A program made the translations under genes and the position numbers. The notes under the pieces are model-generated. The model did not search any database and had not been told where the DNA came from. It worked only from the letters and a program-made list of their open reading frames with translations. A stretch of 64,000 nt of DNA from IMG/VR virus record IMGVR_UViG_3300032240_001991, positions 262,659-326,658 of that record. One strand, written 5' to 3'. Below are positions 33,227 to 57,940 of the stretch, piece after piece (position 1 is the stretch's first letter; each line of letters opens with the position of its first letter).

Positions 33227-33254
33227 CTAGGTATAAAATGGCGAAAATTATAAT

Positions 33255-35897: not shown

Positions 35898-35903
35898 TAA
35901 CAT

Positions 35904-37634: not shown

Positions 37635-37650
37635 TTGAATAAATAACTTT

Positions 37651-37902
37651 ATGTTACTAAACGAATTCATTTATTTTAACGACAACGAACGGGAGATGCC
37701 TGATAAAAATCGTTATGATCCCAAGCATGACACTGGTGTTATTAAAATGAGTGATCTGCGTAAAAGCAGACTAACGCTGCGTATGCTCAATGACCTACGA
37801 AAATCAAGTGAAGCTCACGAAAGAGAAAAGAAAGAAGATCTAGAGTTAGTTAGACAGATGTATGCAGCACCAAAACCTGAAGTTGGACCTGGGCTAATTT
37901 AA
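37651..37902 (+). CDS. Small head-associated hypothetical protein
   Basis: Lies between portal and core genes; N-terminus MLLNEF; directly preceded by a late box. Confidence 0.6.
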   Translation: MLLNEFIYFNDNEREMPDKNRYDPKHDTGVIKMSDLRKSRLTLRMLNDLRKSSEAHEREKKEDLELVRQMYAAPKPEVGPGLI

Positions 37903-38033
37903 GGTTTTTGAAAAATTATCTAATCTAAGGCCAAAACGGCTCGTTTTTGGCCTATTTCGCATAAGTATTCCACAATGGTTGTAAATAATAGTACAGCCTT
38001 GCCAAGTTTTAAAAAAAATAAGGAGAACCCGCA

Positions 38034-39029: not shown

Positions 39030-39038
39030 GGAACAGGG

Positions 39039-39671
39039 ATGAAAAACTTATCATATCTAAGAGAACACCTAAGCTTTGATCAAGCCCAAGTTGTTCTTGA
39101 ATCAGACGATAAAGAAGGCAAGAGCCTTTATCTTAAAGGTATTGCCATTCAAGGCGGTATTCGCAACGCTAATCAGCGGGTTTATCCAGTTGGTGAAATC
39201 GCTAATGCTGTCAAGACTCTTAATGATCAAATACAAAACGGGTATTCTGTGCTAGGAGAAGTTGATCATCCCGATGACCTAAAAGTAAATTTAGACCGTG
39301 TTAGTCACATGATCACAAACATGTGGATGGACGGTCCTAACGGATATGGGAAGATGAAAATTCTTCCCACTCCAATGGGTAATTTAATTCGTACAATGCT
39401 CGAATCAGGTGTGAAGCTCGGAGTTAGTAGTCGTGGTAGCGGAAACGTTGACGACCGTACAGGCCAAGTAGCTGACTTTGAGATTATTACAGTTGATATC
39501 GTTGCCCAACCTAGTGCACCAGGAGCTTATCCTACACCAGTCTACGAACACCTAATGAACGCAAGAGGTGGTAATAGAGCGGTTAGGGTGGCGCATGAGG
39601 TTAAACAAGATCCTAAAGCACAGCAGTACTTAAAAGAGTCGCTGCTGAAAATAATATCCGGTTTGAAATAA
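39039..39671 (+). CDS. gp21: Prohead protease
   Basis: NANQRVYP, LGEVDHP, LGVSSRGSG and DIVAQPSAPGA. Confidence 0.93.
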   Translation: MKNLSYLREHLSFDQAQVVLESDDKEGKSLYLKGIAIQGGIRNANQRVYPVGEIANAVKTLNDQIQNGYSVLGEVDHPDDLKVNLDRVSHMITNMWMDGPNGYGKMKILPTPMGNLIRTMLESGVKLGVSSRGSGNVDDRTGQVADFEIITVDIVAQPSAPGAYPTPVYEHLMNARGGNRAVRVAHEVKQDPKAQQYLKESLLKIISGLK

Positions 39672-39684
39672 CCGTAAGGAGATA

Positions 39685-40785
39685 GTGATGTTGGACGCAT
39701 TCAAACAATTAGTAGAATCAGGCGTGATGACAGAAGAGACAAAATCAGTTGTTGAAGCTGCATTTGCTGCTAAGATTCAAGAGAATCGCGACCAAATCAC
39801 CGCTGAACTTCGTGAAGAATTCGCTCAAAAGTACAGTCATGACAAGACTGTAATGGTTGAAGCAATTGACAAGATGTTAAGCGAGCGATTGGCCGCAGAA
39901 ATGGCTGAGCTTGCAGAAGATAAGAATGCACTAGTTGAGGCTCGTGTTGCTTATCAGCAAAAAATGAAGGGTGACGCTAAGGTATTAGAGTCATTCATCG
40001 TTGGCCAGCTAGCAAAAGAAATGGTTGAATTCCAGAGCGATCGTAAGAAAGTTTCTGAAAATTTTTCCAAGTTAGAAAAATTCGTTGTTCATGCATTGGC
40101 AAAAGAGATTTCAGAATTTGCTACAGATAAAAAAGATCTAGCAGAAACTAAAGTTAAACTCGTAAGAGAAGCCAGAGCAAAGTTTGACGAAATAAAGACA
40201 GAGTTTATTAAGCGTAGTGCAAAGGTAGTTGAGAACGCAGTTACTAAGAAATTAACATCAGAAATCAAGCAATTGAAAGAAGATATTGATAGTGCTCGTA
40301 GCAACGACTTTGGACGTCGTTTATTTGAAGCATTTGCCCAAGAGTATTCTAATTCTTACCTAAACGAGAAGTCCGAAACAAGTAAATTGTTAAAGATTAT
40401 TGAAAAGAAAGAACTAGAATTGCACGAAGCAAAAACAGCTATAGAAGAAAAGCAGCGTATCGTTGAGTCCCGCGAGAAAGAAATCCGTATCGCTAAGGAC
40501 ACAGCCGAGAGAAGAGCTATTCTAGGCGAAATGTTGGCTCCGTTAGGTGCTGACAAAAGAGAATTAATGCGCAGTTTACTTGAGAATGTACACACAAACA
40601 AGTTAGCTGTTGCATTTGACAAATACCTACCCGCAGTGATGGAAGGCGAGACAAAGAAAGTGGCGAAAGCTACTTTGACGGAATCGACTGCTGTAACAGG
40701 CGATCGTGAAGTGAAGGCTGCTCAGCCACAACAGGTAGGCTCAGATAACATTTTAGAAATCCGCAAGTTAGCGGGTCTAAAATAA
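39685..40785 (+). CDS. gp22: Prohead core scaffold protein
   Basis: Coiled-coil, Glu/Lys-rich, FGRRLFEAF motif; sits between gp21 and gp23. Confidence 0.85.
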   Translation: MMLDAFKQLVESGVMTEETKSVVEAAFAAKIQENRDQITAELREEFAQKYSHDKTVMVEAIDKMLSERLAAEMAELAEDKNALVEARVAYQQKMKGDAKVLESFIVGQLAKEMVEFQSDRKKVSENFSKLEKFVVHALAKEISEFATDKKDLAETKVKLVREARAKFDEIKTEFIKRSAKVVENAVTKKLTSEIKQLKEDIDSARSNDFGRRLFEAFAQEYSNSYLNEKSETSKLLKIIEKKELELHEAKTAIEEKQRIVESREKEIRIAKDTAERRAILGEMLAPLGADKRELMRSLLENVHTNKLAVAFDKYLPAVMEGETKKVAKATLTESTAVTGDREVKAAQPQQVGSDNILEIRKLAGLK

Positions 40786-40809
40786 TTTTTACTATTCAAG
40801 GAGACATTA

Positions 40810-41985
40810 ATGTCACAGTTATTAAATGAAAGATGGTCCGAGACAAAGGAAGCTCTGCTTGAAGGCCTATCGGGTAATCGCCGCGCTTCAATGCAGGTTT
40901 GCTTAGAAAATACACGCCGTCACTTGGCAGAAGCCGCAACAAGCGGTGCAACTAGCGCAGGCAACGTTGCAACACTTAACCGTGTAATTCTTCCAGTAAT
41001 TAGACGTGTTATGCCAACAGTTATTGCTAATGAAATCATTGGCGTTCAGCCAATGACCGGTCCTGTTGGTCAGATCCACACTCTACGTGTTCGTTACGCA
41101 GACAGTGGAGACGGAGTAGTAGCAGGTGAAGAAGCACTAAGCCCATTCAAGATTGCTGCTGCTTATTCTGGTAACAATGTGGATTCAAATCCAAAGGCTG
41201 CTTCAACAAGCAACTTAGAAGGTGTACCAGGTAAGAGAATGAGCATCCAGATCCTCAAAGCTCCAGTAGAAGCTAAGAGCCGCAAGCTATCAGCTCGTTG
41301 GACATTTGAGGCTGCACAGGATGCACAGGCTCAGCAGGGCATTGACATCGAAGCAGAAATCATGGCAGCACTAGCTCAGGAAATCACAGTTGAAATTGAC
41401 CAAGAAATCCTAGCTTCACTACGTGGTCTAGCTTCAGTAGAAGAAACATATGACCAGGCACTAGTTTCTGGTACAGCAACATTCGTCGGTGACGAACATG
41501 CTGCACTAGCAATTCAGATCAACCGCGTCAGCAACCTAATTGCACAGCGTACACGTCGTGGCGCAGGCAACTGGGCTGTAGTTTCTAACCAGGCTCTAAC
41601 AATTCTTCAGAGCGCAACAACAAGTGCATTCGCACGTACCACAGAAGGTACATTTGAAGCACCAACAAACACTAAGTTCGTTGGTACACTAAACGGCGCT
41701 ATGAAGATCTATGTTGACAGCTACAAGGCTGATACAGACAACAACAACCAGGTTCTAATTGGATATAAGGGTGGAAGCGAAGCTGATGCACCAGCATTCT
41801 ACTGCCCATACATCCCGCTAATGAGCTCAGGTGTTGTACTAGATCCAACCACATTCGAGCCAGTCGTAGGCTTCCTAACACGCTACGGTTATGTTGAACT
41901 CAGCAACACCGCAAGCAGCTTAGGTAACGCTGCCGACTACCTCGGTAAGGTTGCAATCAACAACGCAACAGTAAGCTTCAAGTAA
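40810..41985 (+). CDS. gp23: Major capsid protein
   Basis: RRVMPTVIANEIIGVQPMTGPVGQIHTLR, SRKLSARWTFEAAQD, FYCPYIPL and GFLTRYG. Confidence 0.96.
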   Translation: MSQLLNERWSETKEALLEGLSGNRRASMQVCLENTRRHLAEAATSGATSAGNVATLNRVILPVIRRVMPTVIANEIIGVQPMTGPVGQIHTLRVRYADSGDGVVAGEEALSPFKIAAAYSGNNVDSNPKAASTSNLEGVPGKRMSIQILKAPVEAKSRKLSARWTFEAAQDAQAQQGIDIEAEIMAALAQEITVEIDQEILASLRGLASVEETYDQALVSGTATFVGDEHAALAIQINRVSNLIAQRTRRGAGNWAVVSNQALTILQSATTSAFARTTEGTFEAPTNTKFVGTLNGAMKIYVDSYKADTDNNNQVLIGYKGGSEADAPAFYCPYIPLMSSGVVLDPTTFEPVVGFLTRYGYVELSNTASSLGNAADYLGKVAINNATVSFK

Positions 41986-42011
41986 TAGAATTACTTGCAA
42001 TAGCATACAGG

Positions 42012-42040
42012 AAACCCGCCGCAAGGCGGGTTTTCTTTTG
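42012..42040 (+). terminator. Rho-independent terminator after the major capsid gene
   Basis: AAACCCGCC-GCAA-GGCGGGTTT followed by TCTTTT. Confidence 0.9.
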
Positions 42041-42056
42041 TCCAAATAAATAGTTA

Positions 42057-42278
42057 ATGCGAATTAACGAGATATTAAACGAATTAGGTGTTGGAGGAGG
42101 CAGGTCTTTTAAAGGCAGTCCTTGTACCAAAGATTGTTCAGGACATTCAGCCGGATATACCTGGGCTAAAAAGAAAGGCGTTAAAAATAGAAATCAATGT
42201 CCTGTTAAACCATCACATCAAAGTTTTTCAAACGGTTGCAGAATCGCAGGCGATGAAGAAAGCGAAGACACAGAATAA
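42057..42278 (+). CDS. Small Cys-rich protein, possible head-packaged protein
   Basis: MRINEILNE leader, then CTKDCSGHSAGYTWA...C...C; late box 4 nt upstream. Confidence 0.6.
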   Translation: MRINEILNELGVGGGRSFKGSPCTKDCSGHSAGYTWAKKKGVKNRNQCPVKPSHQSFSNGCRIAGDEESEDTE

Positions 42279-42361
42279 ATAGCTTGTCAGCCTACATAGG
42301 GTAGGTTTATGCAGAACCTAACTGCGTATCGACATAGAACGTCAACATAAGGAGAAAACAA

Positions 42362-43048
42362 ATGGGACGTCCAATTAAGAAGAAATATTTTGGATTTGGA
42401 AATCCAGACGGTGTAGGTGGAGAAGCGTTTGCATCTCTCGTTGTAACTAACACCGCAACAAACGCAGGATACAGTACAACTACAGCAGTTACATGGGTTG
42501 CATCAAGCCCGCAGTTAGTAGGAGGCACTCCTGCTGCTGGTACCGCTGCTGTTTCTTTTGTTACTGGTCAAGGCCGTATACAATCCTTAGGCATCACTAC
42601 TGCGGGTACAGGTTATACCAGCACCGCTAGTGTAACACTAACTTTTACACCTGCTCGAGTAGGCGGCACTGCTGCAACATTTGTACTAAACTTATCATCT
42701 GCTGTAACAAATACTATAGCTGCAAATGCATGGGTTCCAGTATCAGGAACTCAGTCATTAATAGCAGAGATTTTAAAGCAGAAAGCTTCACATCGTTATC
42801 GTGTAGCAACTTCAGAAGGTACTGGAGTTTGCCAACTAGTTGCTAGAGCGCCGGCAGCTGGCGGCGAAATGACGATTATTGCAACTGATAGTGCAAGTAA
42901 TCAATACTATGTTACTAAATTAACTGCACGCAAGGCTGTAGTTTATCAGAAGTCAGGTTCAGGATATCAGTTTACAAACGGTACTGAAGTAGGCTGGAAC
43001 TTAACCGCAGCACAAGCTAACGTCTCAGTTCTAGTAGCATCTAACTAA
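42362..43048 (+). CDS. Virion structural protein (head decoration/fibre-like)
   Basis: Thr/Ala/Gly-rich beta composition, ITTAGTGYT motif, strong AAGGAG SD, and a terminator downstream. Confidence 0.55.
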   Translation: MGRPIKKKYFGFGNPDGVGGEAFASLVVTNTATNAGYSTTTAVTWVASSPQLVGGTPAAGTAAVSFVTGQGRIQSLGITTAGTGYTSTASVTLTFTPARVGGTAATFVLNLSSAVTNTIAANAWVPVSGTQSLIAEILKQKASHRYRVATSEGTGVCQLVARAPAAGGEMTIIATDSASNQYYVTKLTARKAVVYQKSGSGYQFTNGTEVGWNLTAAQANVSVLVASN

Positions 43049-43067
43049 GATTAATATCTTAGAAAAG

Positions 43068-43094
43068 ATAGCCGCTTTGGCGGCTATTTTTTTG
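43068..43094 (+). terminator. Rho-independent terminator
   Basis: ATAGCCGC-TTTG-GCGGCTAT followed by a T run. Confidence 0.85.
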
Positions 43095-43108
43095 GTTAAA
43101 TAATCTAT

Positions 43109-43624
43109 ATGGCTACTGACTGGTTTTATTGTAACAACGTAACTCAAACCTATGAGGTTATTGAACATATACCTTGGGTTGATACTGATGATTATTTTCC
43201 TATAAAACATGCTAACGGAATGTTTTTAAGTTTATCTGCACCTTTACTGCATATAGCTAATTCTGTAGTTAATGACGTAAAAATGAAAACATATTTTTTA
43301 AATCTTTCAGATTTTCAAATTAAAGGACTCCCTGATATTATCTCAGGAGTTGAAGTTGAGATTAATATGAACAGGGGCGGACGAATTACAGACGAAACAA
43401 TACAGCTTATGTACAATGGAGCGTTTATTGGCGAAAATCGAGCTAACTTTGATTTATCTCCTGATAAACTTTATGGCAGTAACACTGACCTTTGGGGCAC
43501 AGTGTTAACTTCTGCAATTTTATCAAGTAGCACCTTTGGAATAGGGGTCAGATTTCAAAGCCATCCAAGCTGGCCTCATAGTGAATATCCTAGAATTGAT
43601 TACATCAGGATAAGAGTTCACTAA
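43109..43624 (+). CDS. Hypothetical late protein (171 aa)
   Basis: Full ORF with a TTAAATA box 6 nt upstream; beta-rich. Confidence 0.6.
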   Translation: MATDWFYCNNVTQTYEVIEHIPWVDTDDYFPIKHANGMFLSLSAPLLHIANSVVNDVKMKTYFLNLSDFQIKGLPDIISGVEVEINMNRGGRITDETIQLMYNGAFIGENRANFDLSPDKLYGSNTDLWGTVLTSAILSSSTFGIGVRFQSHPSWPHSEYPRIDYIRIRVH

Positions 43625-45853: not shown

Positions 45854-45934
45854 TACTGAAGAAATTCAGTAGGAACATACTGTGGTAAACCCGCAATGTA
45901 AGGTGGTTGCCCGTGTAACACGGTGTATGAGGAG
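45854..45934 (+). promoter_or_regulatory. Candidate structured 5' leader RNA
   Basis: GAAA-capped hairpin and a multibranch fold abutting the GAGGAG SD; late box at 45839-45846. Confidence 0.45.
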
Positions 45935-45939
45935 TGTCA

Positions 45940-48900
45940 ATGGCCATCGGTCGAATCTCAGGTCCGCTATTAGCTAAAAATCTTTTAAGAGATGGCATAG
46001 ACCTTGCATTTGAAACAGATTTATTATACTTAGATGTAGCCAATGGGCGCATCGGTGTAAGAAAAAATAATCCTTCGTACGAACTTGATGTTAACGGTAC
46101 TATCAATGCTAAAAATTTAAGAGTAGTATATACCGGACCAGGCAGCGGGAAAGCAACGCTTGGCAAGTTAGAAATTACATCAGGCACTATTACTACTACA
46201 GTTGGCCCAATAAACATTCAACCAAGTGGTAATGAAACGATCAATCTTGTTGGCGACACAACTGTTACCGGAAATCTTCACGCTACTGGAAATATAACAG
46301 CTGATGGTAATATTACTTTAGGAAATAATACCGCAACTGACGTTGTTATATTTGAATCTGAAATTGGATCCTCTTTAATACCGGCAGCAGATCAACAATA
46401 TTCGTTAGGTAGTCAAGAACGTGCATGGCTTGATGCCTATGTGTCAACATTAGTTGCAAATCAACTTTCAAGCACCAGCACATTAAACATTAACTCTGGT
46501 GCCAATCTTGTACAGATTAATTCAGACCTTAAGGTAAATGGACAAAATCCCTTAGGCACCGCTCCAGTTATCACTAATGTCTTGTTTGTTACAATGGACG
46601 GTAATGACACTAATGATGGACGAGCAGCTGACGCAAGTCGTGCCTGTAAAACAATTTCAGGAGCAATACGTAGTCCTTATTATCGACCAGGTACTTTAAT
46701 TAAAGTATATAGCGGACATTATTTAGAGAATAATCCGTTATTATTACAACCAAATACAGCAGTTGTAGGAGACGATCTAAGAACAACATCTATTGAACCA
46801 ATTAATAAGACACAGGACTTATTCCATGTTCAAAGCGGTTGCTATATTGCGCAAGTGCAATTTTATAATGGACGCAGCGGATTATTACCCGGACCATATG
46901 TTAACGGTACTAATAGAGGTGCATATTGCACAGCATTTCCTCCACAAGTAGGAGGAAATAAGATTGACGTTTATCAATCACCTTACATACAGAACTGTAC
47001 TAATCAAAGCGGTCCGTGGTTAGTTGACGGAACAATGTTTGTACCTAACCAAACGGTACAAATTCCTCAAGCAGTTGGTACAACAGTATTTGACTCTAAC
47101 ACAACTACCATTGTTGTTACAATAACAACAGGCACAGTTGTTCCGGGGTTACATGTTATTAGCGGACCCCAAGACGTAGGATTTACTAATGCGAGAACAT
47201 TATTATTGTCAAATCTTGCATTTATACAAGACCAAACTGTTGCTTGGGTAAATCATCAGGTAAAAACTAGTAGCACAGTTTACATACCTCAGCTAGCTAC
47301 CACAACAAATTTTACAAATTTTACATACGATCAAGCTAAATGTTATCGCGATGTAGGATTAATTTTACAAAATGTAGCCTACGACGCAACTTTTGGCGGA
47401 AACGAAAAAGCCGTTGAAGCTGGGTTAGCTTATTGGAACGGCGTTATTAACTTAATTGAAGGGCAGCAAGGACAAACTACTGCGGCAATTAATTACATCA
47501 ATACATTAAGTCAAGCAATTATCACAAATACTACTGTAACAAATCTATACAGTTCATCAACTGCACAGATTATTAATACAGCGTTAGTGAACGGTGTTAT
47601 TGCTAGCGAAGAAATTACTAGCGCAATTGGCACTATAATTACAATTATCAATGACGGACCTATTGCCGCACCGCCTATCTTTATAAGCTGCGGACCTGAA
47701 ACGCCGTTAGTTAGCGCAGAACTATTATTACAACAAAATCGTAAATTCTTGCAAGGCGAAGTTACTGCCTATGTAGATGCAACCTATCCAACATTTGAAT
47801 ACAAGAAAGATTATTGCTATCGTGATGTTGGATTGATTGTTGATGCAGTAGCTCAAGACATTATTGTAGGCGGCAACACAAAATCTATTGAAGCAGCATT
47901 AAGTTATTATACAGGCGGTAAAGGTGATAGCAGCGTAGCTGAAACAGCAATAGTCAACAACTTTAATTTAATTAAAAATATTATACAAAATGGTCCATCA
48001 GTAGCTCCAGATCCTGTAAGCGGTCCTAATTTAGGGACAGGATTTTCTAACGCACAGGATATATTACTTGCTAATATCTTCTTTGTGCAAACAGAAGTTA
48101 GCGCATATGTAAGAAGCTTATTTGACAACACATTTAGATTAACACAATTACAACAAAATTTATGCTACAGAGACATTGGCACTATACTTACTGCAATTGC
48201 TGAAGATACAGCAGCTGGCGGTAATGTTAATACTGTTTACGCAGGATTACAATATTTTAATGGTTCTGTAAGTGTGCTACCAGGCAATCAAACAGAAAAA
48301 ACAATTCTCACTTTAAACTATATGCAACAGCTCTGTGTTAATATTATTAAAAATATTCAAAACACAGGGCTGTATCAAGTTTTAATTCCGCAGGTATTTG
48401 GAGATTATACCGGTACTGATCAAGCTAACGCAGTTAACGCTAATATTGAATTGATCACTGACATTATAACATTGGGACCAACCGTTGTTACATCGTTGTA
48501 CCCAATCTCTCAATCGATGACAACTGATGTTAGAAACATAAATGCATTTAATTTATTAACAGCAAACAAATCTTTTCTTGCTGCAGAATTAACCGGTTGG
48601 GTTGACACTACTTTTTCAAAAGGTTTTAATTATAATACAGCAACTTGCTATAGAGATACTGGGTTAATTGTTGACAGTTTAGCTTGGGACTTGTTACAAC
48701 AAGACACTAGTCAATCAATCTTCTCAGGACTTCAATACTATAATAAATCAGGATACACTGGTTCAATTAATAAAGAATTGACAACAACTACCGCAGCTAT
48801 TAACTATGCTAAAGAATTAGCAATGAAGGTAGTTGTCAACAGTACAGTAACTAATTTACAAACAGCAACTCTACAGGTATTTAATTTAGTTAATCCTGGA

Positions 48901-51900
48901 TCGCCGGTAACAACTGGTACTGTTGGAACACTGTTCAATACTGTTACTAACATATTAGTAAATGGCACTGCTGGAGTTACTAATCAAATCATACCTAACA
49001 ATACAGCATCTGTTGTAACCGGTATTGTTAATGCTTACAATTTATTACAGGCTAATAAATCCTTTATAGAAGACGAAGTTATTGCTTATGTAGACTTGAC
49101 TACTGGCGGATTTAGTTATGATCAACCTAAGTGTTATAGAGATGTTGGGTTAATTGTTGATAGTTTAGCAGAAGACTTGTTATTCAACGGAAGTAGTCAG
49201 AGTAATTTTTCTGGATTACAATATTGGGCACAAGGATCTACAAGTATCCCAGGAGAACTTAATACAACAACTGCGGCAATTAGTTACGTAAGAGACCTTG
49301 CAGTAAAAGTTGTTGTTGGTGATACAAGTGGCACAAGATATCAAAACTCAGTTCTTCAAATCACTAGCAGTACTGTTGCTACAGTAGCAGAACAACAGAA
49401 GGTCTATGACGAATTTAATCTAATACTTGATATTATACTTAATGGCACTAGTGGAGTTACTGACAAAATTATACCAAACGGAGTCACAATTAGTAGTGAT
49501 CCAAGCATACAGGCGGCATATTTCTTATTAGAAGCTAATAAATCATATCTGCAGGCAGAAGCAATCGCTTATGTTACTGCTATTAAGACACAGGGATTCT
49601 TCTATGACGTTAATAAATGTTATAGAGATGTTGGATACATGGTTGACAGTGTATCATTTGATATGTTATATGGCGGTAATCGACAAGCAATACAATCTGG
49701 TGTATATTACTACGGATTTGACAGTGCTACGACTAATGTTCCAAATGAACAGACACAGGTTGTTGCAGCATACGAATACATTAAAACGCTTTCAAGTTAT
49801 ATAATTAAAGGGCAAAGACTTCCGTCTCAGTATCAATATTCTGTAATACAAGTAATACCTACATTAGTTGGTAGTAATGCAGACGTTGCTGCGGTAAATT
49901 CTAACGTTGATTTAATAGTTAACATTATTAATACCGGAACTAGCGCAGCATTAGCACCAACTCCAATTAGTTTAACATCTACATCAACTCAGGCAACTAT
50001 TAACGCGGTTAATGCTCTTGTAGTAAATCGACAATTTATACAGGCTGAAGTAGTTGCTTATATTAATAGTACCTTTTCACCAGGGTTTATCTATGATAGA
50101 ACCAAGTGTCGCAGAGATGTTGGGTACATTATTGACGGTGTCAGCTTTGACTTATTGCATGGCGGAAATCGACAAAGTGTACAGAGCGGAGTATATTATT
50201 ACGGATTTGATTCAAATTCTAGTGTAATTACCTATGAATTGGCTCAAATTACCGCCGCTTATAACCGAATTAAGGAGATTTCTAGTAAGATTATTAAAGG
50301 ACTGCCTGTTACTCCTACTTTAGGTAATAACGTTACACAAGTTACAGGAAGTAGTTCAGCTACAGATACCGAAGTTGCATATATCGCTAGTGAAATTAAT
50401 ATTATCAATGATATTATTAATAATGGCCCTAGCACCGGTTACCCAAAGACACCGATTAAGTTAACTTCAACAAGCACACAAGCAGTTATTGATGCACATA
50501 CATACTTACTAGCTAACCGTACATTTATTCAAACTGAGCTAATTGCTTATATAAATTACTGGTTTGCACAGGCAGGAACAACTTCTACAACTTCAACATT
50601 TGTTTACGACAAAATTAAATGTCAGCGAGATACAGAATTAATTGTAGACAGTGTAGCATTAGATTTACTATACGAAGGTAATACACAAAGTACCTTTGCT
50701 GGATTGCAATACTGGTCGCAAGGAACAACCAATATTCCAAGCGAACAAACTACAACAACTAATGCCATTGCCTACGCGCAGTCTCTAGTAGATACTCTAA
50801 TTTCTCCGTACACTACTTCCACCAGTGTTGACGAGAATTTTAATTTAATCATTAACATAATTAATTCTGGAACATCTTTAGTAACTGATTTAATTGTTCC
50901 AAACAGCTTACCTTCAACTAATACTGGAACAGTGGCTGCATATAATATAATACAGTCAAATAAAGCATCAATACAACAACAAACAGTAGACTGGGTCAAT
51001 ACAAATAATCCAGGGTTTGTTTATAGCACATCAACATGTTATAGAGACGTTGGATATATTTTAGACTGTGTCAGCTTTGACTTGCTACATGGCGGAAATC
51101 GACAAAGTATTCAAGCAGGTACGTACTATTACGGATATAGCACTACACAGACAAATATTGTAAACGAAATACCTCAGGTAATAGGGGCATACAATCAATT
51201 AAAATATTTGATTAACGAAGTTCTTGCAAATCGTGCGTTAACTAAAACATATCAAGTAGTATATCCTCAGGTATTAATTCCTGCTTATATGGGAACTGCT
51301 AGCGTTATCAAGGGAGAAGAAGTAATTACAGCTGATGCAATTACCTATCTCAACAGTATTAGTCTAAATGTAATTAGTAATACTCCGGTTCCTGTAAGAC
51401 GAGGTCCTGTAGCACAAACATTTAATACATCGTTAGACGGCGGACAGCATGCCGGCACTGCGGTGACAAGAAATTATACTATCATCTCAGACGTAATTAA
51501 GAAAGGCCCTAATGCAGCTCCAGTACCGTTCACTGGTTCAGGATTATTTGCAACTACAGGTGTAAGTAGCGATGACGTTCGCCGTAGTCCTACTATTTTA
51601 TCAATTGTTACACAAACAGGAAATACTTACACATTAGAATTATCTGAGCCAACTGTAGGAGATAGTCAAGGCGGTACATTATACTTTGGTAATACATTAG
51701 TATTTCCTGCAACAGACGAACAAGTTGAAGAAGCAAGTCTAAAGTATACCGGCAATGCAACTACATGGAACACACGTAAAGTAGATCCTATTGGTGCTAT
51801 GGGAGGAAGCTTAGTTGACGGAAGCGTCGTTAGCGATCGAAGCCCAATTCAATCCTTCGTTTACGATGCGTTTACCCAAGTATCGCAAGGTGGCAGAGGT

Positions 51901-53481
51901 GTTCACGTTACTAATAATGGCTACGCGCAGTTAGTATCTGTGTTTACAATTTTCTGTAGTGTAGGCGTTCAGGTAGATAACGGAGGTATTGCTAGTATTG
52001 TAAACAGTAACGCAAACTTTGGCGATATCTGCTTGTTATCAAACGGCTTTGGTAAGAAAGAATTTAGCGGAACCGTATATAATCCGCCATATCCGTCATA
52101 TCTACCAAATGGCGAATACTACCCATTTGGTTATTATCCGCAAAAAGGACAGGTTGAGGTTTATATTCCAGACACATCCTATCGTCCACACATTGCACTA
52201 ATTATGGAAGTTGAACCTCCAACTACCTACATTGACTATTCTGGAAATGTTGTTACTTATAAAAACGATCAAGGATATCCAGGATTTTTAAATGCAACGC
52301 CAAGCGTTGCATTTCTAACTACCGGCAGTATTACTATTAACGACATTGACACAAATGGTATAGCGGTAGGCAATTCTGTTTACATTAGAGATCAATACGG
52401 TAATACTGGAACCACAGTTAATAGTGTATTCACTCCGTATGTATACCCAGATACAATAGTAACTGATGTAAGTTATCGAACAGTTACGCTTAATCAAGCG
52501 TTAGGAGCAGGAGGAGCAGATCCAAGCAATACTGCACAATCAATTAATGCAGACTACTTTAATGTCTATTTCTGCGGCAATGCATACTATACAGTTTTAA
52601 GTAGTACAGTTAACGATAGTTTTGGAAAACCATTAGGAACTAACATTTTATCTTCAACAAATGTAACGACCACTGGAACAGATCAAATATTACCAGAAAT
52701 AGCAAGTTTACAATTAATTAATACTACACTAGCTGGTTATATGACGGATGCAAGCGTTAATGCATCAGCTATAAACTTTGTTAATAACTGCATTAATAAT
52801 ATTATCATACCTATAATTACTGCAACAAATGTTACTGTAGCAGAAACTCTGTTTACTCCTATTAAGAGTGCAATACCTCCTGCTGGTGCTAGCCTTGCAA
52901 TTAGTGTCATTAATAATAATGTTGAAAATGTTGTAACTACTGTTACTAATTTTATTGCTACAACGTATCCTACTTTATATAACGACACTAGATTTAATTT
53001 AGAAAAGTGTAAGAGAGACGTACGATTAACATTAAAACAACTTACGTTTGAACTAGAAGCAGGTGGAAATTATTACAGTATCTATACCGGTTTAAGTTAT
53101 TGGTATCGTGCAGGCACACACCATATTATTAATATAGAAGAAAATGTAACAAATACTGCACTTTTTCCAGACGGAGCTACGGTTAACTTTTATCAAAGAA
53201 GTTATATGAGTGCTTCTGGTTATGTATTTGAATATGTAGGTGCAGGAGTAACATACAGTGCGTTGCCTCAGAGAGGTGTAAAAGACCCTGTACAAGGCAA
53301 GGAAGTAGTTCAAGTAAATAATGGTAAGGTGTTCTTTACTTCTACAGACCAAAACGGAGACTTCAGAATTGGTCCAGAACTAGTTATCGCTCAAGCTACA
53401 GGTGTATTGAGCGGTAGAACATTTACTAAGAGTTTATTTGCTAACATGACACCGTTTATTTTAGCAATTGAAGCCGGTTAA
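45940..53481 (+). CDS. Giant virion appendage protein: beta-helix-like tailspike domain with 10 inserted CxRD helical repeats
   Basis: LFVTMDGNDTNDG...CKTISGA...IKVYSGHYLE...VGDDLRTT beta-helix entry motif, followed by repeats of consensus F.YD..KCYRDVG.IVD.V..D...GGN..S...G..YY. Likely start ATG 45940 after GAGGAG. Confidence 0.7.
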   Translation: MAIGRISGPLLAKNLLRDGIDLAFETDLLYLDVANGRIGVRKNNPSYELDVNGTINAKNLRVVYTGPGSGKATLGKLEITSGTITTTVGPINIQPSGNETINLVGDTTVTGNLHATGNITADGNITLGNNTATDVVIFESEIGSSLIPAADQQYSLGSQERAWLDAYVSTLVANQLSSTSTLNINSGANLVQINSDLKVNGQNPLGTAPVITNVLFVTMDGNDTNDGRAADASRACKTISGAIRSPYYRPGTLIKVYSGHYLENNPLLLQPNTAVVGDDLRTTSIEPINKTQDLFHVQSGCYIAQVQFYNGRSGLLPGPYVNGTNRGAYCTAFPPQVGGNKIDVYQSPYIQNCTNQSGPWLVDGTMFVPNQTVQIPQAVGTTVFDSNTTTIVVTITTGTVVPGLHVISGPQDVGFTNARTLLLSNLAFIQDQTVAWVNHQVKTSSTVYIPQLATTTNFTNFTYDQAKCYRDVGLILQNVAYDATFGGNEKAVEAGLAYWNGVINLIEGQQGQTTAAINYINTLSQAIITNTTVTNLYSSSTAQIINTALVNGVIASEEITSAIGTIITIINDGPIAAPPIFISCGPETPLVSAELLLQQNRKFLQGEVTAYVDATYPTFEYKKDYCYRDVGLIVDAVAQDIIVGGNTKSIEAALSYYTGGKGDSSVAETAIVNNFNLIKNIIQNGPSVAPDPVSGPNLGTGFSNAQDILLANIFFVQTEVSAYVRSLFDNTFRLTQLQQNLCYRDIGTILTAIAEDTAAGGNVNTVYAGLQYFNGSVSVLPGNQTEKTILTLNYMQQLCVNIIKNIQNTGLYQVLIPQVFGDYTGTDQANAVNANIELITDIITLGPTVVTSLYPISQSMTTDVRNINAFNLLTANKSFLAAELTGWVDTTFSKGFNYNTATCYRDTGLIVDSLAWDLLQQDTSQSIFSGLQYYNKSGYTGSINKELTTTTAAINYAKELAMKVVVNSTVTNLQTATLQVFNLVNPGSPVTTGTVGTLFNTVTNILVNGTAGVTNQIIPNNTASVVTGIVNAYNLLQANKSFIEDEVIAYVDLTTGGFSYDQPKCYRDVGLIVDSLAEDLLFNGSSQSNFSGLQYWAQGSTSIPGELNTTTAAISYVRDLAVKVVVGDTSGTRYQNSVLQITSSTVATVAEQQKVYDEFNLILDIILNGTSGVTDKIIPNGVTISSDPSIQAAYFLLEANKSYLQAEAIAYVTAIKTQGFFYDVNKCYRDVGYMVDSVSFDMLYGGNRQAIQSGVYYYGFDSATTNVPNEQTQVVAAYEYIKTLSSYIIKGQRLPSQYQYSVIQVIPTLVGSNADVAAVNSNVDLIVNIINTGTSAALAPTPISLTSTSTQATINAVNALVVNRQFIQAEVVAYINSTFSPGFIYDRTKCRRDVGYIIDGVSFDLLHGGNRQSVQSGVYYYGFDSNSSVITYELAQITAAYNRIKEISSKIIKGLPVTPTLGNNVTQVTGSSSATDTEVAYIASEINIINDIINNGPSTGYPKTPIKLTSTSTQAVIDAHTYLLANRTFIQTELIAYINYWFAQAGTTSTTSTFVYDKIKCQRDTELIVDSVALDLLYEGNTQSTFAGLQYWSQGTTNIPSEQTTTTNAIAYAQSLVDTLISPYTTSTSVDENFNLIINIINSGTSLVTDLIVPNSLPSTNTGTVAAYNIIQSNKASIQQQTVDWVNTNNPGFVYSTSTCYRDVGYILDCVSFDLLHGGNRQSIQAGTYYYGYSTTQTNIVNEIPQVIGAYNQLKYLINEVLANRALTKTYQVVYPQVLIPAYMGTASVIKGEEVITADAITYLNSISLNVISNTPVPVRRGPVAQTFNTSLDGGQHAGTAVTRNYTIISDVIKKGPNAAPVPFTGSGLFATTGVSSDDVRRSPTILSIVTQTGNTYTLELSEPTVGDSQGGTLYFGNTLVFPATDEQVEEASLKYTGNATTWNTRKVDPIGAMGGSLVDGSVVSDRSPIQSFVYDAFTQVSQGGRGVHVTNNGYAQLVSVFTIFCSVGVQVDNGGIASIVNSNANFGDICLLSNGFGKKEFSGTVYNPPYPSYLPNGEYYPFGYYPQKGQVEVYIPDTSYRPHIALIMEVEPPTTYIDYSGNVVTYKNDQGYPGFLNATPSVAFLTTGSITINDIDTNGIAVGNSVYIRDQYGNTGTTVNSVFTPYVYPDTIVTDVSYRTVTLNQALGAGGADPSNTAQSINADYFNVYFCGNAYYTVLSSTVNDSFGKPLGTNILSSTNVTTTGTDQILPEIASLQLINTTLAGYMTDASVNASAINFVNNCINNIIIPIITATNVTVAETLFTPIKSAIPPAGASLAISVINNNVENVVTTVTNFIATTYPTLYNDTRFNLEKCKRDVRLTLKQLTFELEAGGNYYSIYTGLSYWYRAGTHHIINIEENVTNTALFPDGATVNFYQRSYMSASGYVFEYVGAGVTYSALPQRGVKDPVQGKEVVQVNNGKVFFTSTDQNGDFRIGPELVIAQATGVLSGRTFTKSLFANMTPFILAIEAG

Positions 53482-53490
53482 GGAAAAATT

Positions 53491-53874
53491 ATGGCACAGT
53501 TACCATTAAACACGTTTAAAACAAAAACAGCAATTTTAACAACAAATACTACGGCAACAATATATACCGCACCTATTGGTGTAACTTCTATTATTTTGAT
53601 GACACAAGTATCTAATCTTGATACTGTGCCGCATGCAGTGTCTTTTTCTCATCATAGAAATCTTCCTATTCTTCCTAATGCTCAAGGAACAGGCGGTCAG
53701 CCGGCAAACGTTACTACAGAATTAGTAAAGGGATACTTAGTTCCTTCAAACGATGCAGCTAGTATGACCACAGGCAAAATGATTATTGAACAATTAGACA
53801 GTATATATTGCTATGCAGATGCAGAAGGTGTTTGTAAAATTACGTTAAGCGTACTGGAGACTGCGAATGCCTAA
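53491..53874 (+). CDS. Small beta-rich virion protein, probable paralog of 44672..44989
   Basis: AAGGA SD; motifs TIYTAP..VTSIIL...VSN and GKMIIE..DSI. Confidence 0.55.
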
Positions 53875-56800
53875 TCTTATTAGTGGTCGCGTACTGGTTA
53901 CCCCTGGTAATCTTTTAGATCCAAACCGTAACCAGTTTTTAAATTTAACTAATGCACAACCAGCATTAGGCCCTTCGCCTACCACTAGCACCGGTTATAC
54001 TTTAATTACATTTAATACTGGAACTATCTATTCAAATAGTTTAGGTAATTTAGCATTTACTGCTGGATTAATTACTCCAAATATTTCTAGTATTAACACT
54101 ATAACATTACAGGTAACAAGCTCAGGCACTATTCAGCTATTATCAGGAAATGTAAATGTAAGCAAAGGAATGACCTTCCTTAATACTTCTACTGGGTTTA
54201 TTAATCTAGGAGGAAGAGATAGCAAAAGAATTCCTAACTATTATGAAGGTACGACGCCTCCAACTGGAACATATTTTTGGGAAGGCGACCAATGGTACGA
54301 TCCTGTAACTGATGTTTTGTATGAATGGATCCTTGATGATAACGGCCAACGATGGGTTGACGTTACTGGACCATTCTTTAGTACTACAATTGCTGTTGCT
54401 GGATTTGTTGGCAGTTACGGAGCAGTTGGTTACACTGGTAGTAAAGGTGATCAAGGAATTCCTGGAACGCCTGGTATACCGGGAGGTTACTCAGGCAGTA
54501 AGGGAGATACAGGACAATTAGGTTATGTAGGTAGCCAAGGCCTGCCAGGAGATGTAGGATATAAAGGTAGTGTTGGTTATACTGGGTCAGCTAGTACAAC
54601 ATTAGGATATACAGGGTCAACCGGATATACCGGTTCAGCTAGTTCTGCAGCAGGATATACTGGCTCGGCTAGCACAACTGTTGGATATAGTGGTAGCCGA
54701 GGTTATACAGGCAGTGTTGGTTACTGGGGTAGTAGGGGCGACACTGGTTATTGGGGCAGCGAAGGTAGCTTAGGGTATACAGGAAGTCGAGGATATACAG
54801 GCAGTCAAGGACTATCTGGGTATTACGGATCTAAGGGTGATATAGGATTTACTGGTAGTTTAGGTTACTGGGGCAGTATTGGGTATGTAGGTAGTAAAGG
54901 ATTTACTGGATCTAAAGGCGACACAGGATTTACCGGTAGCTTGGGTTATTGGGGCAGTATTGGTTACTACGGATCTACAGGATACAATGGCAGTAACGGA
55001 TTTAACGGATCTAAAGGCGACACAGGATTTACCGGCAGCTTGGGTTATTGGGGCAGTATTGGTTACGTAGGCAGTAAAGGATACTCTGGTTCTAAAGGCG
55101 ATACAGGATTTACTGGCAGTATAGGATTTATTGGTAGCCTTGGCTACTACGGCAGTGTTGGATACTACGGCAGTGTTGGATATACTGGTTCCGCCAGTAC
55201 TGCGCTAGGATATACTGGTTCTTATGGATACTACGGAAGTGTTGGGTATATAGGATCAGCAAGCGTTATTCCTGGTTATACTGGTAGTCGAGGATCGGGA
55301 TTTACTGGTTCTGCAAGTACCTTACTAGGATATACTGGATCAATTGGTTATTACGGTAGTGTTGGATACACTGGTTCTGCAAGCACCGCAGCAGGATATG
55401 CAGGAAGTGTTGGATATGTTGGTAGTGTTGGAGCTGGTTATACTGGTTCTGCAAGTACCGTAGCAGGTTATGCAGGAAGTGTTGGATATATAGGTAGTTC
55501 CGGAACTGGATACACTGGTTCTGCAAGTACCGTAGCAGGTTATGCAGGAAGTGTTGGATATATAGGTAGTTCCGGAACTGGATACACTGGTTCAGCGAGT
55601 ACTACGATAGGATACTCTGGTAGTTTAGGGTATACCGGAAGCATTGGATTTACTGGATCTTCTGGATATGTAGGAAGTAGAGGATATTACGGTTCTGTTG
55701 GCTTTACAGGATCGTTAGGGTATTACGGTTCTATTGGATATGTTGGATCCTCTGGGTACACCGGTTCAGCTAGTACGCAAATAGGATATACCGGATCGCT
55801 TGGTTATTTTGGTAGCCAAGGAAGAGATGGCCCATTAGGTCCTCTAGGTCCAATTGGATACATAGGATCCAATGGTAGTGTAGGAACATTGGGTCCACTT
55901 GGTCCTCTTGGTCCTCTTGGTCCAATAGGTTATATTGGTAGCCAAGGAAGAGACGGTCCGTTAGGTCCATTAGGTCCAATTGGATTTACAGGATCTAATG
56001 GTAGTGTAGGAACATTGGGTCCTCTTGGTCCTCTTGGTCCTCTTGGTCCAATAGGTTATATTGGTAGTCAAGGAAGAGACGGTCCGTTAGGTCCATTAGG
56101 TCCAATTGGATACATAGGATCCAATGGTAGTGTAGGAACATTGGGTCCTCTTGGTCCTCTTGGCCCTCTTGGTCCAATAGGTTATATTGGTAGCCAAGGA
56201 AGAGACGGTCCGTTAGGTCCAATTGGACCAATTGGATATATTGGCTCAGGCGGAAGTTTAGGCAGTCAAGGTCCACTTGGTCCATTGGGTCCATTAGGTC
56301 CATTAGGTCCAATAGGTTATTTTGGTAGTCAAGGAAGAGACGGTCCACTAGGTCCAATTGGATATAGTGGCTCAGGCGGAAGTTTAGGCAGTCAAGGTCC
56401 GCTTGGTCCACTTGGTCCACTTGGTCCAATAGGTCCTCAGGGTGTTCAAGGTCCACTTGGTCCAATAGGTTTTACAGGATCTAACGGTAGTGTTGGAACA
56501 CTAGGCCCATTAGGTCCGCTTGGTCCACTAGGCCCAATTGGCTTTATTGGTAGTCAAGGCAGAGATGGCCCGTTAGGTCCAATAGGTTACATTGGGTCTG
56601 GCGGAACGTTAGGTAATCAAGGACCTCTTGGTCCATTAGGTCCATTAGGTCCATTAGGACCAATAGGTCCTCAGGGCGGCCAAGGTCCACTTGGTCCATT
56701 AGGTCCATTAGGTCCACTTGGCCCAATAGGTTTTACAGGATCTAACGGTACTGTAGGAACATTAGGCCCATTAGGCCCATTAGGCCCATTAGGTCCACTT

Positions 56801-57940
56801 GGCCCAATAGGACCACAAGGAAGGGACGGCCCATTAGGTCCAATAGGATTTATTGGTAGCCAAGGTATTGGTCCAATTGGATTTATTGGTAGCCATGGAC
56901 CAGTTGGTCCACTAGGTCCGCAAGGTACTCAAGGCCCACTTGGTCCGTTAGGCCCAATAGGATTTATTGGTAGTCAGGGCGATTTAGGATTTATTGGATC
57001 TGCAAGCAATATTAGAGGTTATACAGGTTCTGGTTCGCAAGGTAATCTAGGTCCGTTAGGCCCATTAGGCCCAATTGGTCCTCAAGGTACCCAAGGTCCG
57101 TTAGGTCCTCAAGGTACCCAAGGTCCGTTAGGTACTCAAGGTCCGTTAGGTCCAATAGGATTTATTGGTAGTGCAGGCGGATATACCGGAAGTCAGGGTC
57201 CAATTGGACCTCAAGGTACTCAAGGTCCGTTAGGTCCAATAGGATTTATTGGTAGTGCAGGCGGATATACCGGAAGTCAGGGTCCGATTGGACCTCAAGG
57301 TAATTTTGGTCCGTTAGGCCCATTAGGCCCATTAGGTCCAATTGGACCTCAGGGTAATTTAGGTCCAATAGGACCTCAGGGTAATTTAGGTCCATTAGGT
57401 CCAATTGGAATTGACGGACCATTAGGTCCAATAGGACCAGCGGGCCCAGGAACTAGCATTAATGCTTCTTTTTCAACAGTATCAACACCAAACTGGTCTT
57501 CACCAAATTACATTGTTGGTGTAACAGCAGCGGGCGGTGCAACTCCTTATATAGTATCGTCTCTTACACCGATATATTTCACTCCGTCAACTGGAGTGTT
57601 GGCCGCTCCAGTTCTTAATGCGACTTCCGACATTAACAAGAAAACTAATATTATTCAAATTGATGACGGGTTAGAAATCGTTGGGCAATTAACAGGAGTT
57701 AGATTTACGTGGAAAGACAACAAAATGCCTAGTGCTGGATTAATTGCTCAAGAAGTAGAACAAGTGATGCCTGAATTAGTACACGAAAATGATGGCGTTA
57801 AATCATTAAACTATAACGGTATTATTGGTGCTCTTGTAGAAGCTGTTAAGAATTTAACATCAAAGATCACTTTGCTTGAGGAAAAAACCATTAAAGAATT
57901 AAAAGATGAAATTGAAAGTCTCAAAGGAGTAAACAACTAA
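53867..57940 (+). CDS. Collagen-like tail fibre with C-terminal intramolecular chaperone (peptidase S74-like)
   Basis: About 1000 aa of Gly-X-Y. C-terminus [10 protein letters not shown]...[10 protein letters not shown]...[16 protein letters not shown]...[18 protein letters not shown]. Confidence 0.85.
54401..57450 (+). repeat. Coding tandem repeats (9-, 18- and 72-bp units) of the collagen-like domain
   Basis: Runs of ggtccatta-type units; exact 72-bp duplication at 55442/55514. Confidence 0.9.

Follow-up and report, generated by a model that had tools for sequence, protein, structure and literature searches.

Has the protein fold that carries pigment in the photosynthetic antenna become a repeated building block of a phage fibre, and would it still hold a pigment there? 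This question is raised by P0001, an open reading frame of 2,515 aa on the plus strand (45934..53481) of the window, by which we mean the whole 64,000-nucleotide stretch of viral DNA that was analyzed. The original prediction placed ten in-frame cysteine codons of a CxRD motif in this region and likened the repeats around them to the chromophore-binding helices of phycobiliproteins (PBPs), inserted as tandem domains into a beta-helix appendage. A regex scan of this one frame recovered all ten codons, with exactly ten matches to C.RD against 0.02 expected from protein composition, and the first copy reads as predicted. The motif cysteines fall at aa 470, 628, 744, 905, 1067, 1229, 1392, 1563, 1702 and 2359; the resulting spacings of 158, 116, 161, 162, 162, 163, 171 and 139 aa agree with the predicted range of 116-171 aa, and the last copy stands apart at a distance of 657 aa.

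Architecture of the repeat array

Every CxRD of P0001 lies within a helical domain of ~160 aa, in which a conserved helix precedes the motif by ~30-40 aa and the motif itself is embedded in the consensus Y-D-x-x-K-C-x-R-D-x-G-x-I-x-D-x-x-x-x-D-L-L-x-G-G-N. Each domain starts ~45-57 aa ahead of its Cys, and the array spans ~47170-51525; its start had first been put at 47341, and the domain boundaries move it to ~47170. In total the protein comprises nine tandem domains, two of them shortened (copies 2 and 8), followed by an additional half copy and, set apart toward the C-terminus, a partial tenth copy:

45934..53481, plus strand: P0001, giant predicted virion fibre/appendage protein with the array (PHROG tail-fibre/structural families, gene context)
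46552..47064, plus strand: conserved core, N-terminal half, aa 207-377 (matches SynMITS9220M01_093 and B23 gp322)
47170..47679, plus strand: PBP-like domain 1, Cys codon 47341 (HMM, i-E 2e-47)
47698..48021, plus strand: PBP-like domain 2, shortened, without the helix G region, Cys codon 47815 (HMM)
48028..48519, plus strand: PBP-like domain 3, Cys codon 48163 (HMM)
48511..49008, plus strand: PBP-like domain 4, Cys codon 48646 (HMM)
49000..49488, plus strand: PBP-like domain 5, Cys codon 49132, part of the three-domain model (HMM)
49486..49977, plus strand: PBP-like domain 6, Cys codon 49618, the modelled copy (AF2 model)
49975..50460, plus strand: PBP-like domain 7, Cys codon 50107, C-R-R-D (HMM)
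50464..50913, plus strand: PBP-like domain 8, shortened in the G-H loop, Cys codon 50620, C-Q-R-D (HMM)
50908..51300, plus strand: PBP-like domain 9, Cys codon 51037 (HMM)
51292..51525, plus strand: extra half domain, helices G-H only, no Cys motif (HMM positions 81-160, i-E 8e-14)
51844..52098, plus strand: conserved core, C-terminal half, aa 1971-2055 (contiguous with the N-terminal half in repeat-free homologues)
52885..53163, plus strand: PBP-like domain 10, partial (helices B-E-F), Cys codon 53008, C-K-R-D (HMM positions 11-99, i-E 3e-15)
53128..53478, plus strand: conserved C-terminal domain, aa 2399-2515 (common to cyanophage fibre proteins)

Amino-acid identity among the copies is only 17-52% and no tandem repeat was found at the DNA level in the array region, which together rule out a recent duplication or an assembly artefact and mark the copies as old duplications kept by selection. 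A near-identity search of phage records with the DNA of the P0001 region gave no match, and an ESM Atlas feature search with one repeat returned low-score, unrelated clusters only.

A fibre protein with an inserted module

The phage is an uncultured jumbo myovirus of the Rak2-like kind, and P0001 is predicted to form a fibre or baseplate appendage of its virion. The P0001 gene has head genes (portal, prohead protease, major capsid) on one side and genes for collagen-like fibres on the other, with baseplate gp25/gp53-like genes also among its neighbors, and the protein matches the tail-fibre/structural families phrog_5342, 4527 and 701, the tail-fibre matches reaching E 1e-98; homologues are labelled "virion structural protein" or "tail fiber" in database records. 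Residues 207-377 match aa 695-849 of SynMITS9220M01_093 and aa 54-189 of B23 gp322. In SynMITS9220M01_093, which is free of repeats, the equivalents of aa 207-377 and 1973-2048 are contiguous, and the predicted insertion is thereby borne out: nine and a half tandem domains are inserted into the conserved core, with the partial tenth near the C-terminus. The C-terminal domain is 47-51% identical to the C-termini of SynMITS9220M01_093 and B23 gp322 and matches phrog_3442 and phrog_17885. The N-terminal half of the core looks beta-helix-like by eye; this half has no PDB or Pfam sequence match, and since searches of PDB sequences with the non-repeat flanks (aa 1-420 and 1866-2515) found nothing, the term beta-helix describes a sequence impression only.

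The repeats are phycobiliprotein homologues

The domains of P0001 are homologues of the globin-like PBP core (helices A, B, E, F, G and H). Pfam PF00502 scored 30.2 bits against the whole protein (E 5e-7; gathering threshold 22.2), with stretches in domain 1 (aa 463-534, profile positions 69-140) and domain 9 (profile positions 31-138). Repeat profiles searched against the PDB matched PBPs almost exclusively: all 44 matches of a ten-repeat profile were PBPs, the best being CpcA (E 5e-4, chain residues 37-150), and with a 129-sequence profile 11 chains of phycocyanin alpha fell below E 1e-3, the best at E 1.4e-4. The PBP likeness first proposed from the motif therefore holds in profile searches, with one revision. 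The comparison had been made with phycocyanin beta, and the best sequence match is phycocyanin alpha, to which the domains are nearest in sequence; the best NCBIfam match is likewise phycocyanin alpha (E 1e-5), and NCBIfam CpeA matches domain 10 (aa 2322-2379, profile positions 40-102). Equivalog-level similarity is not reached (TIGR01338, 25.6 bits against a cutoff of 269; NF058506, 15.9 against 225). In the HMMER alignment the motif Cys falls on the chromophore-binding alpha Cys84, and Cys84, Arg86 and Asp87 of helix E are present in 10/10 copies.

The predicted fold agrees with the sequence. An AF2 model of domain 6 (pLDDT 95.4, pTM 0.90) has six helices, and the top 50 Foldseek matches to it are all PBPs. 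Superposed on PBP beta chains with VIA, the model gave Z 17.1 and an rmsd of 2.0 A over 132 residues, its residues 1-149 aligning with PBP residues 30-177, and a wide structure search independent of Foldseek ranked PBPs 1-8 (Z 12-16), followed by the bilin-binding domain of photocobilin (Z 11.4), sensor globins (Z 8-11) and haemoglobins (Z 6-7). The globin-like fold foreseen for the repeats is thus what the models predict, and P0001 has no GAF, PAS or PHY match in Pfam or NCBIfam; the fold is globin-like, not GAF.

The original prediction had allowed for convergence. A resemblance by chance or convergence, without common ancestry, would accord with the modest single-sequence E-values (1e-4 to 1e-7) and with the scores of lone repeats against PF00502, which stay under the domain threshold (19.8 and 17.2 bits). 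Against it, database matches are almost only PBPs, and the fold, the helix register that places the Cys in helix E, and several motifs (helix B A..L..N, KCxRDxGY, GG[NT] and AGL) all coincide, which makes convergence very unlikely. Profile matches, Foldseek, structural superposition and the wide search together effectively refute it, and we find it scarcely credible.

The phage domain is nonetheless a modified PBP. It shares the globin-like helical core and the K-C-x-R-D-x-G-Y register of PBP alpha subunits (CpcA/RpcA; PF00502, TIGR01338; Z 13-17), but it has no X-Y hairpin, a B-E loop 7-10 residues shorter than the PBP counterpart, and a long G-H loop that resembles beta subunits; it also stands in tandem within a predicted virion protein, rather than forming a free antenna subunit of ~160 aa. 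The alignment begins at PBP residue ~28-30 and the repeat unit starts at helix A/B. The X-Y helical hairpin of PBPs mediates the alpha-beta monomer and (alpha-beta)3 discs (PMC4553884), and the P0001 domain, missing it, is therefore without the alpha-beta pairing surface. A three-domain model (pTM 0.66) is consistent with beads on a string, and a one-repeat homotrimer prediction returned a score of 0.00, which is no answer and evidence neither way.

Distribution among cyanophages

The PBP-like domain family is large, comprising 1,446 cluster representatives, and a single protein carries from 2 to about 35-40 copies. All 329 records of cultured phages that contain the domain belong to cyanophages, and their hosts are picocyanobacteria throughout, in keeping with the phototroph hosts that a PBP-like domain had suggested; among cultured phages, the domain is confined to cyanomyoviruses. 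Four domain-carrying MAG contigs were binned with heterotrophs, which is probably mis-binning. The same domain family is found in giant fibre/baseplate proteins of T4-like cyanophages, namely S-PM2 p091 (T4-GC 830) and the P-HM2 proteins gp7 PHM2_086 and PHM2_096. These share the N-core and C-terminal domains with P0001, which differs from them in array position and copy number and in lying in a Rak2-like jumbo backbone rather than in Kyanoviridae. With its position differing among homologous proteins and its copy number varying, the array module is mobile. The phage backbone of the window is of the Rak2/GAP32 type, whose cultured relatives infect Proteobacteria; the fibre homologies suggest a cyanobacterium as the host of this phage. 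We found no description of these cyanophage proteins as PBP-like in the searchable literature.

Conservation and remodelling of the putative chromophore site

Conservation was counted in 151 divergent proteins with 1,512 domains among them, of which 93.5% retain the complete CxRD; taken singly, the Cys is retained in 95.4%, the Arg in 96% and the Asp in 98%. The ancestral chromophore-site residues, (Lys)-Cys84-x-Arg86-Asp87, are under strong purifying selection. Exactly one Cys is present in 80% of the domains, and a disulfide within the domain is rejected as the explanation on that ground. In the 70 copies that have no Cys, Arg drops from 98 to 47%, Asp from 100 to 66%, Tyr75 from 100 to 69% and Thr92 from 91 to 52%, while no change is seen at Asp59, Asn18 or the GGN turn; the site formed by Cys, Arg, Asp, Tyr75 and Thr92 thus decays as a unit, in a manner that general divergence does not account for. 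By the alignment of the ten-repeat profile to PDB chains, Thr92 and Tyr75 map to the walls that helices G and F, respectively, contribute to the alpha-84 pocket. The pocket has also been remodelled relative to PBPs, since the invariant Asp59 and Tyr75 of the phage domains are not PBP features.

One candidate function for such an array is purely structural, with the PBP fold exapted as a stable helical spacer that gives fibres length or stiffness and binds no ligand, and CxRD serving folding, packing or interdomain contacts. The wide range of copy number, the variable array position among homologues, the loss of the X-Y hairpin, the shortened B-E loop, the new invariant residues Asp59 and Tyr75 and the bead-like three-domain model all fit an apo module of this kind. 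It leaves unexplained, however, why 95% of copies that are ~20-30% identical keep a lone Cys and two bilin-contact residues, and why the loss of Cys takes Arg, Asp, Tyr75 and Thr92 with it while structural positions stay. We regard a purely structural role as possible, if on the unlikely side.

The site may instead have been repurposed, for metal coordination (Cys/Asp/Asp/Tyr), for a host surface ligand, or for a covalent cross-link within or between subunits, such as one between Cys and the conserved loop residue Gln122 that would harden the fibre. Metals and cross-links are common stabilizers of phage fibres, the domains carry an invariant acidic/polar cluster foreign to PBPs (Asp54, Asp59, Tyr75, Asn18, Gln122), and a variant with C-x-D-D exists in the PHM2_096 subfamily of P-HM2, in which the propionate-binding Arg is lost. 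On this account, however, a new function must have arisen with all three ancestral bilin-contact residues retained, and we know of no precedent for a repurposed bilin pocket in a PBP/globin-like fold. Asp59 and Asn18, moreover, do not co-vary with Cys and are therefore not obviously in its site. We consider repurposing distinctly unlikely.

A possible bilin-bearing fibre

The best explanation of the observations, to which we assign as a whole a probability of roughly 40%, is that the array consists of host-derived PBP domains that hold a bilin in the Cys84 pocket. The domain would have been captured from a PBP gene of a cyanobacterial host and then multiplied to serve as a rod or spacer within fibres, with the canonical Cys84 pocket still holding a ligand. 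Tetrapyrrole binding had been raised in the original prediction as no more than a possibility. The most economical ligand would be a bilin (PEB, PCB or PUB) joined to the Cys by a thioether bond during infection, whether through host Cys84 lyases or by autocatalysis, and a fibre loaded in this way would be pigmented. Points against this reading are the shortened B-E loop and remodelled pocket, the loss of the propionate-binding Arg in the PHM2_096 subfamily, and the Proteobacteria hosts of cultured Rak2/GAP32-type relatives. We know of no report of pigmented cyanophage particles, though the expected absorbance would be very small.

Known proteins offer partial precedents for a bilin-loaded fibre domain. 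The PBP domain of ApcE, like smURFP, places the PBP fold inside a larger multidomain protein or outside the antenna (Z 13-14), and ApcE attaches its bilin autocatalytically, with no lyase, a precedent for lyase-independent loading; it differs from the phage domain in the position of the Cys, in a loop insertion, and in being a single-copy cellular domain for energy transfer. Photocobilin (PDB 8j2w, 8j2y), the next-best structural match after PBPs, uses a globin/PBP-like bilin-binding domain for photoreception, not light harvesting, but has no detected sequence similarity to the phage domain and is a bacterial, cytoplasmic protein coupled to a B12 domain.

In favor of a bilin, the synthesis and lyase genes ho1, pcyA, pebS and cpeT occur almost only in myocyanophages, the one exception noted in a review being pebS in a podovirus (PMC10452541). 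P-SSM2 has heme oxygenase (ho1) and a bilin reductase-type gene, yet no PBP-like domain; phage bilin genes are therefore not solely for this domain, and the notion that they exist to load it is weakened. The tail-fibre cluster that follows immediately downstream of cpeT in P-HM2 consists of genes without the domain, an arrangement that we do not count as evidence.

Clear ancestry in a host protein would also suit mimicry, in which the domains act as decoys that imitate host PBPs and bind lyases, linkers, NblA or proteases during infection. The domains are, however, embedded in giant late structural proteins beside head and fibre genes, they are missing the X-Y hairpin and the PBP assembly surfaces, and arrays of 10-40 copies would be needless for such a role, which makes mimicry highly improbable.

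Light-dependent adsorption

A more speculative extension of the bilin-bearing fibre is that light absorption by the bilin would change fibre conformation and gate adsorption. Light-dependent adsorption of cyanophages works by a mechanism that does not depend on photosynthesis, and a proposal in the literature attributes it to light-sensitive tail fibres (PMC6628666). For adsorption, red safelight is reportedly ineffective. The domain is present in S-PM2 and P-HM2 (5 copies each), both of which need light to adsorb, and no copy occurs anywhere in the genomes of P-SSM2 and P-SSP7, both of which adsorb in the dark; this concordance covers four phages only, which are not phylogenetically independent. 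Bilin-loaded PBP-like domains might then serve as a virion-borne photoreceptor in which light switches the fibre conformation and licenses adsorption, an idea that we hold to be improbable at present. If true, it would explain why S-PM2 and P-HM1/P-HM2 require light, but not photosynthesis, to adsorb, and it would supply the bilin and lyase genes of phages with an acceptor that is itself encoded by the phage. No earlier case would then be known of a virus particle with its own light sensor.

Significance

To our knowledge, the only PBPs on record are antenna subunits for photosynthesis, from cyanobacteria, red algae and cryptophytes, together with a few engineered derivatives. Here the PBP fold, with its pigment-attachment residues intact, is a mobile and heavily amplified building block of fibres; a host photosynthesis gene appears to have become virus structure rather than an auxiliary metabolic gene. 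Cultured cyanophages with the domain number in the hundreds and metagenomic protein clusters with it about 1,400, and we found no paper that describes it. Two questions become experimentally accessible, namely what causes the strict light-dependence of adsorption in some cyanophages, and whether the phages encode an acceptor for their own bilin synthesis and the lyase-like CpeT; the domain bears on the light-sensitive tail fibres that were proposed without a candidate (PMC6628666). If a bilin is bound autocatalytically, the family would in addition offer a large natural collection of scaffolds for small fluorescent proteins. Phage particles with the domain may carry pigment and possibly sense light.

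A tandem array within a fibre protein

The whole repeat region lies within a single ORF, P0001 (45934-53481, + strand), which encodes a 2,515-aa fibre or appendage protein. The original prediction had placed ten C-x-R-D motifs in this protein, and a regex scan finds exactly ten, at the predicted Cys codons, against a chance expectation of 0.02 from the protein's composition. Alignment of the ten copies puts the motif at the centre of a ~160-aa repeat, which we refer to as the phycobiliprotein (PBP)-like domain; copy borders were set with a profile that combines 129 diverse copies:

47170-51300, + strand: nine tandem PBP-like copies
51292-51525, + strand: extra half copy, helix G-H
52885-53163, + strand: separate partial tenth copy

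Copies 2 and 8 are shortened. Amino-acid identity among the copies is 17-52%, no DNA-level tandem repeat was found across the array, and the array is old and kept by selection. Searching with the 129-copy profile revealed no PBP-like domain in any other ORF of the window, among them a 4,396-aa ORF (2557-15747, - strand) which adjoins baseplate genes and has an identically sized counterpart on another contig.

Homology to phycobiliproteins

Pfam PF00502 (Phycobilisome protein) matches the whole of P0001 with E 5e-7; its 30.2 bits exceed the gathering score of 22.2, and the match runs through copies 1 and 9. Single copies by themselves fall below threshold. When the ten-copy profile was compared with all PDB sequences, each of the 44 matches at E<10 was a PBP, led by CpcA (E 5e-4, chain residues 37-150), and the 129-copy profile matched 11 phycocyanin alpha chains below 1e-3 (best E 1.4e-4). 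Among NCBIfam families, P0001 came closest to phycocyanin alpha (E 1e-5), and its tenth copy to CpeA; each match lies far under its equivalog cutoff. These profile alignments place the repeat Cys onto the chromophore-binding Cys84, and helix B, the K-C-x-R-D-x-G-Y run, the GG[NT] turn and the AGL motif also coincide with those of PBPs.

An AlphaFold2 model computed on the 129-copy alignment has six helices (pLDDT 95.4, pTM 0.90), and the Foldseek search that had been proposed as a check of the fold returned PBPs as all of its top 50 PDB matches. VIA-align superposes the model on a PBP with Z 17.1 and an rmsd of 2.0 A over 132 residues, with model residues 1-149 aligned to PBP residues 30-177; this stretch is the globin-like core and lacks the X-Y hairpin. 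A search independent of Foldseek ranked PBPs 1-8 (Z 12.3-15.6), followed by the photocobilin bilin-binding domain (Z 11.4), sensor globins (Z 8-11) and haemoglobins (Z 6-7); AlphaFold DB clusters gave weaker matches only, to globin sensors. In a three-domain model (pLDDT 86.8, pTM 0.66) the domains are confident and their mutual arrangement is less certain. From the profile and structural matches, we regard PBP homology as established, with a probability of about 95% on sequence and modelling, and the sequence affinity of the repeats as established to be alpha-type. A merely convergent resemblance is not a serious option given this evidence.

Insertion and mobility of the array

P0001 has matches among the PHROG tail-fibre and structural families, and its neighbourhood encodes a T4-type portal, prohead protease, major capsid, gp25/gp53/gp5-like baseplate parts, a tail-collar protein and collagen-like fibres. 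In SynMITS9220M01_093, a cyanophage homologue without the PBP-like domain, the counterparts of P0001 aa 207-377 and 1973-2048 lie directly side by side. So do these two core parts in gp322 of Synechococcus phage B23 (2842-7335 of comparison record L009), where a PBP-like array follows both. Because of this contiguity, P0001 aa ~378-1970 is an insertion in a conserved core. Together with the PF00502 and PDB profiles and the model structure, the contiguous core in homologues supports the proposal that tandem PBP-like domains were inserted in a fibre protein. Since the array lies after the core in B23 gp322 and inside it in P0001, it behaves as a mobile cassette, and the PBP-like array is accordingly classed as a mobile module.

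Conserved site residues and a putative ligand

In PBPs the chromophore is attached by a thioether to Cys84; Asp87 makes hydrogen bonds to the central pyrrole nitrogens, and the propionates are bound by Arg86, joined in alpha subunits by Lys83. The CxRD motif is complete in 93.5% of 1,512 copies drawn from 151 divergent proteins; taken singly, Cys is present in 95.4% of them, Arg in 96% and Asp in 98%. Exactly one Cys occurs in 80% of the copies, so that an intradomain disulfide cannot account for Cys conservation. Where the Cys is missing (70 copies, which are not independent of one another), Arg falls from 98 to 47%, Asp from 100 to 66%, Tyr75 from 100 to 69%, Thr92 from 91 to 52% and Ala71 from 67 to 33%. 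Asp59, the GGN turn, Asn18 and Ala55 keep their conservation in these copies, so the loss is confined to one set of residues and does not reflect general divergence. HMMER alignment to CpcA places Thr92 at the Trp-Tyr position where helix G begins, and Tyr75 in helix F right after AGL; both positions are walls of the alpha-84 pocket.

Conservation statistics give good support to the retention of a functional ligand site. On the most economical reading, the canonical pocket would still hold a ligand, for which a bilin is the obvious choice; we give the bilin somewhat less than even odds. Against it count a B-E loop shorter than that of PBPs, the new invariant residues Asp59 and Tyr75, and the subfamily of P-HM2 PHM2_096 (32380-43425 of record L007), in which three copies read C-x-D-D, with Cys and Asp kept and the propionate-binding Arg replaced by Asp.

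Distribution of the domain

An exhaustive profile search over 1.84 billion representative proteins (cut-off E<=1e-3) matched 1,446, including 617 at E<=1e-30. Most are giant, up to 6,382 aa, with up to 40 matched stretches each; our own domain count in the best 150 of the 1,446 gave a maximum of 35 copies per protein. P0161, a syntenic orthologue of P0001 on 248-570 kb contigs, has 21 copies. With P0001 as tblastn query, 329 of 50,697 cultured-phage records match. Every one of them belongs to a phage of Synechococcus or Prochlorococcus or is a marine single-virus genome, and the annotations of the genes hit read tail fibre, short tail fibre, baseplate wedge or structural protein. BFVD structural matches are of the same protein kinds, including S-PM2 Q5GQW5.

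Scanning 185,579 species genomes for the motif turned up such giant proteins only on four short MAG contigs (L001-L004) binned to the heterotrophs Sphingobacteriaceae, Crocinitomicaceae and Gammaproteobacteria, with 3-8 PBP-like copies. Their neighbours are phage-fibre genes, one of which, on L002, resembles cyanophage and pelagiphage Mosig fibres. They are likely mis-binned phage contigs; a non-cyanobacterial host range for these carriers is conceivable. In the openly searchable full-text literature, we found no description of PBP-like domains in phage structural proteins, and the sole existing trace found was the label "PF00502 (faint)", assigned automatically in a precomputed gene table.

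Light-dependent adsorption and phage bilin genes

Some cyanophages need light for adsorption, and dim red light is without effect (PMC6628666). We screened the phages used in that study plus S-PM2 (n=4) for the domain.

Adsorption and PBP-like domains in four cyanophages
S-PM2: adsorption light-dependent; p091 with five CxRD copies
P-HM2: no dark adsorption; two CxRD in gp7 and three C-x-D-D in fibre PHM2_096 (first 96 kb of the 184-kb genome)
P-SSM2: dark adsorption; no PBP-like domain in the whole 252-kb genome
P-SSP7: dark adsorption; no PBP-like domain

Domain presence is concordant with light-dependent adsorption in 4/4 phages, a tiny sample confounded by phylogeny, and we treat it as a lead only. 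That a domain-bound bilin gates adsorption by light is speculative and, in our estimate, improbable. The genes ho1, pcyA, pebS and cpeT are almost confined to myocyanophages, the exception being pebS in one podovirus (PMC10452541); myocyanophages are also the group carrying the PBP-like domain. P-SSM2 lacks the domain yet encodes a heme oxygenase and carries a bilin-reductase-type gene, so such genes cannot exist for the domain alone. Directly upstream of tail-fibre clusters lie cpeT in P-HM2 (L006, 19862-28591) and the heme oxygenase in P-SSM2 (L017, 16709-34595); the adjoining fibre genes are without the PBP-like domain.

Phage backbone and host

A metagenomic contig of 326,658 bp ends with the window, its final 64 kb. 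Three of its structural genes are closest to Rak2/GAP32/PA5oct-type jumbo phages:

35904-37634: portal, ~50% identity
40810-41985: major capsid, 68-71% identity
15762-19151: baseplate wedge, 37% identity

The backbone is accordingly assigned, by sequence similarity, to a Rak2/GAP32/PA5oct-like jumbo myovirus and not to a classical cyanomyovirus. A SegE-type GIY-YIG homing endonuclease gene (30263-30742, + strand) lies between Mre11/Rad50-like genes and the structural block, and composition around it is unusual (30001-32000; GC 0.42, AT skew +0.32). Collagen-like fibre genes occupy 53867-57940 and 62809-63999 (+ strand), the latter with a Pfam Collagen match; the C-terminal domain of the former is a widespread fibre-tip module. 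GC is raised (0.44-0.45) at ~54-58 kb, with strong GC skew (+0.28 at 54-56 kb).

The C-terminal tip (~130 aa) of a 775-aa ORF (60398-62725, + strand) matches cyanophage tail fibres only, in 7/7 records (the S-TIM5 group and S-SRM01), and is likely a receptor-binding tip. It offers a hint of a cyanobacterial host that is independent of P0001. From fibre genes only, namely the relatives of P0001 and this tip, we infer a cyanobacterial host, and the phage may represent a jumbo cyanophage from a lineage in which every cultured member infects Proteobacteria.
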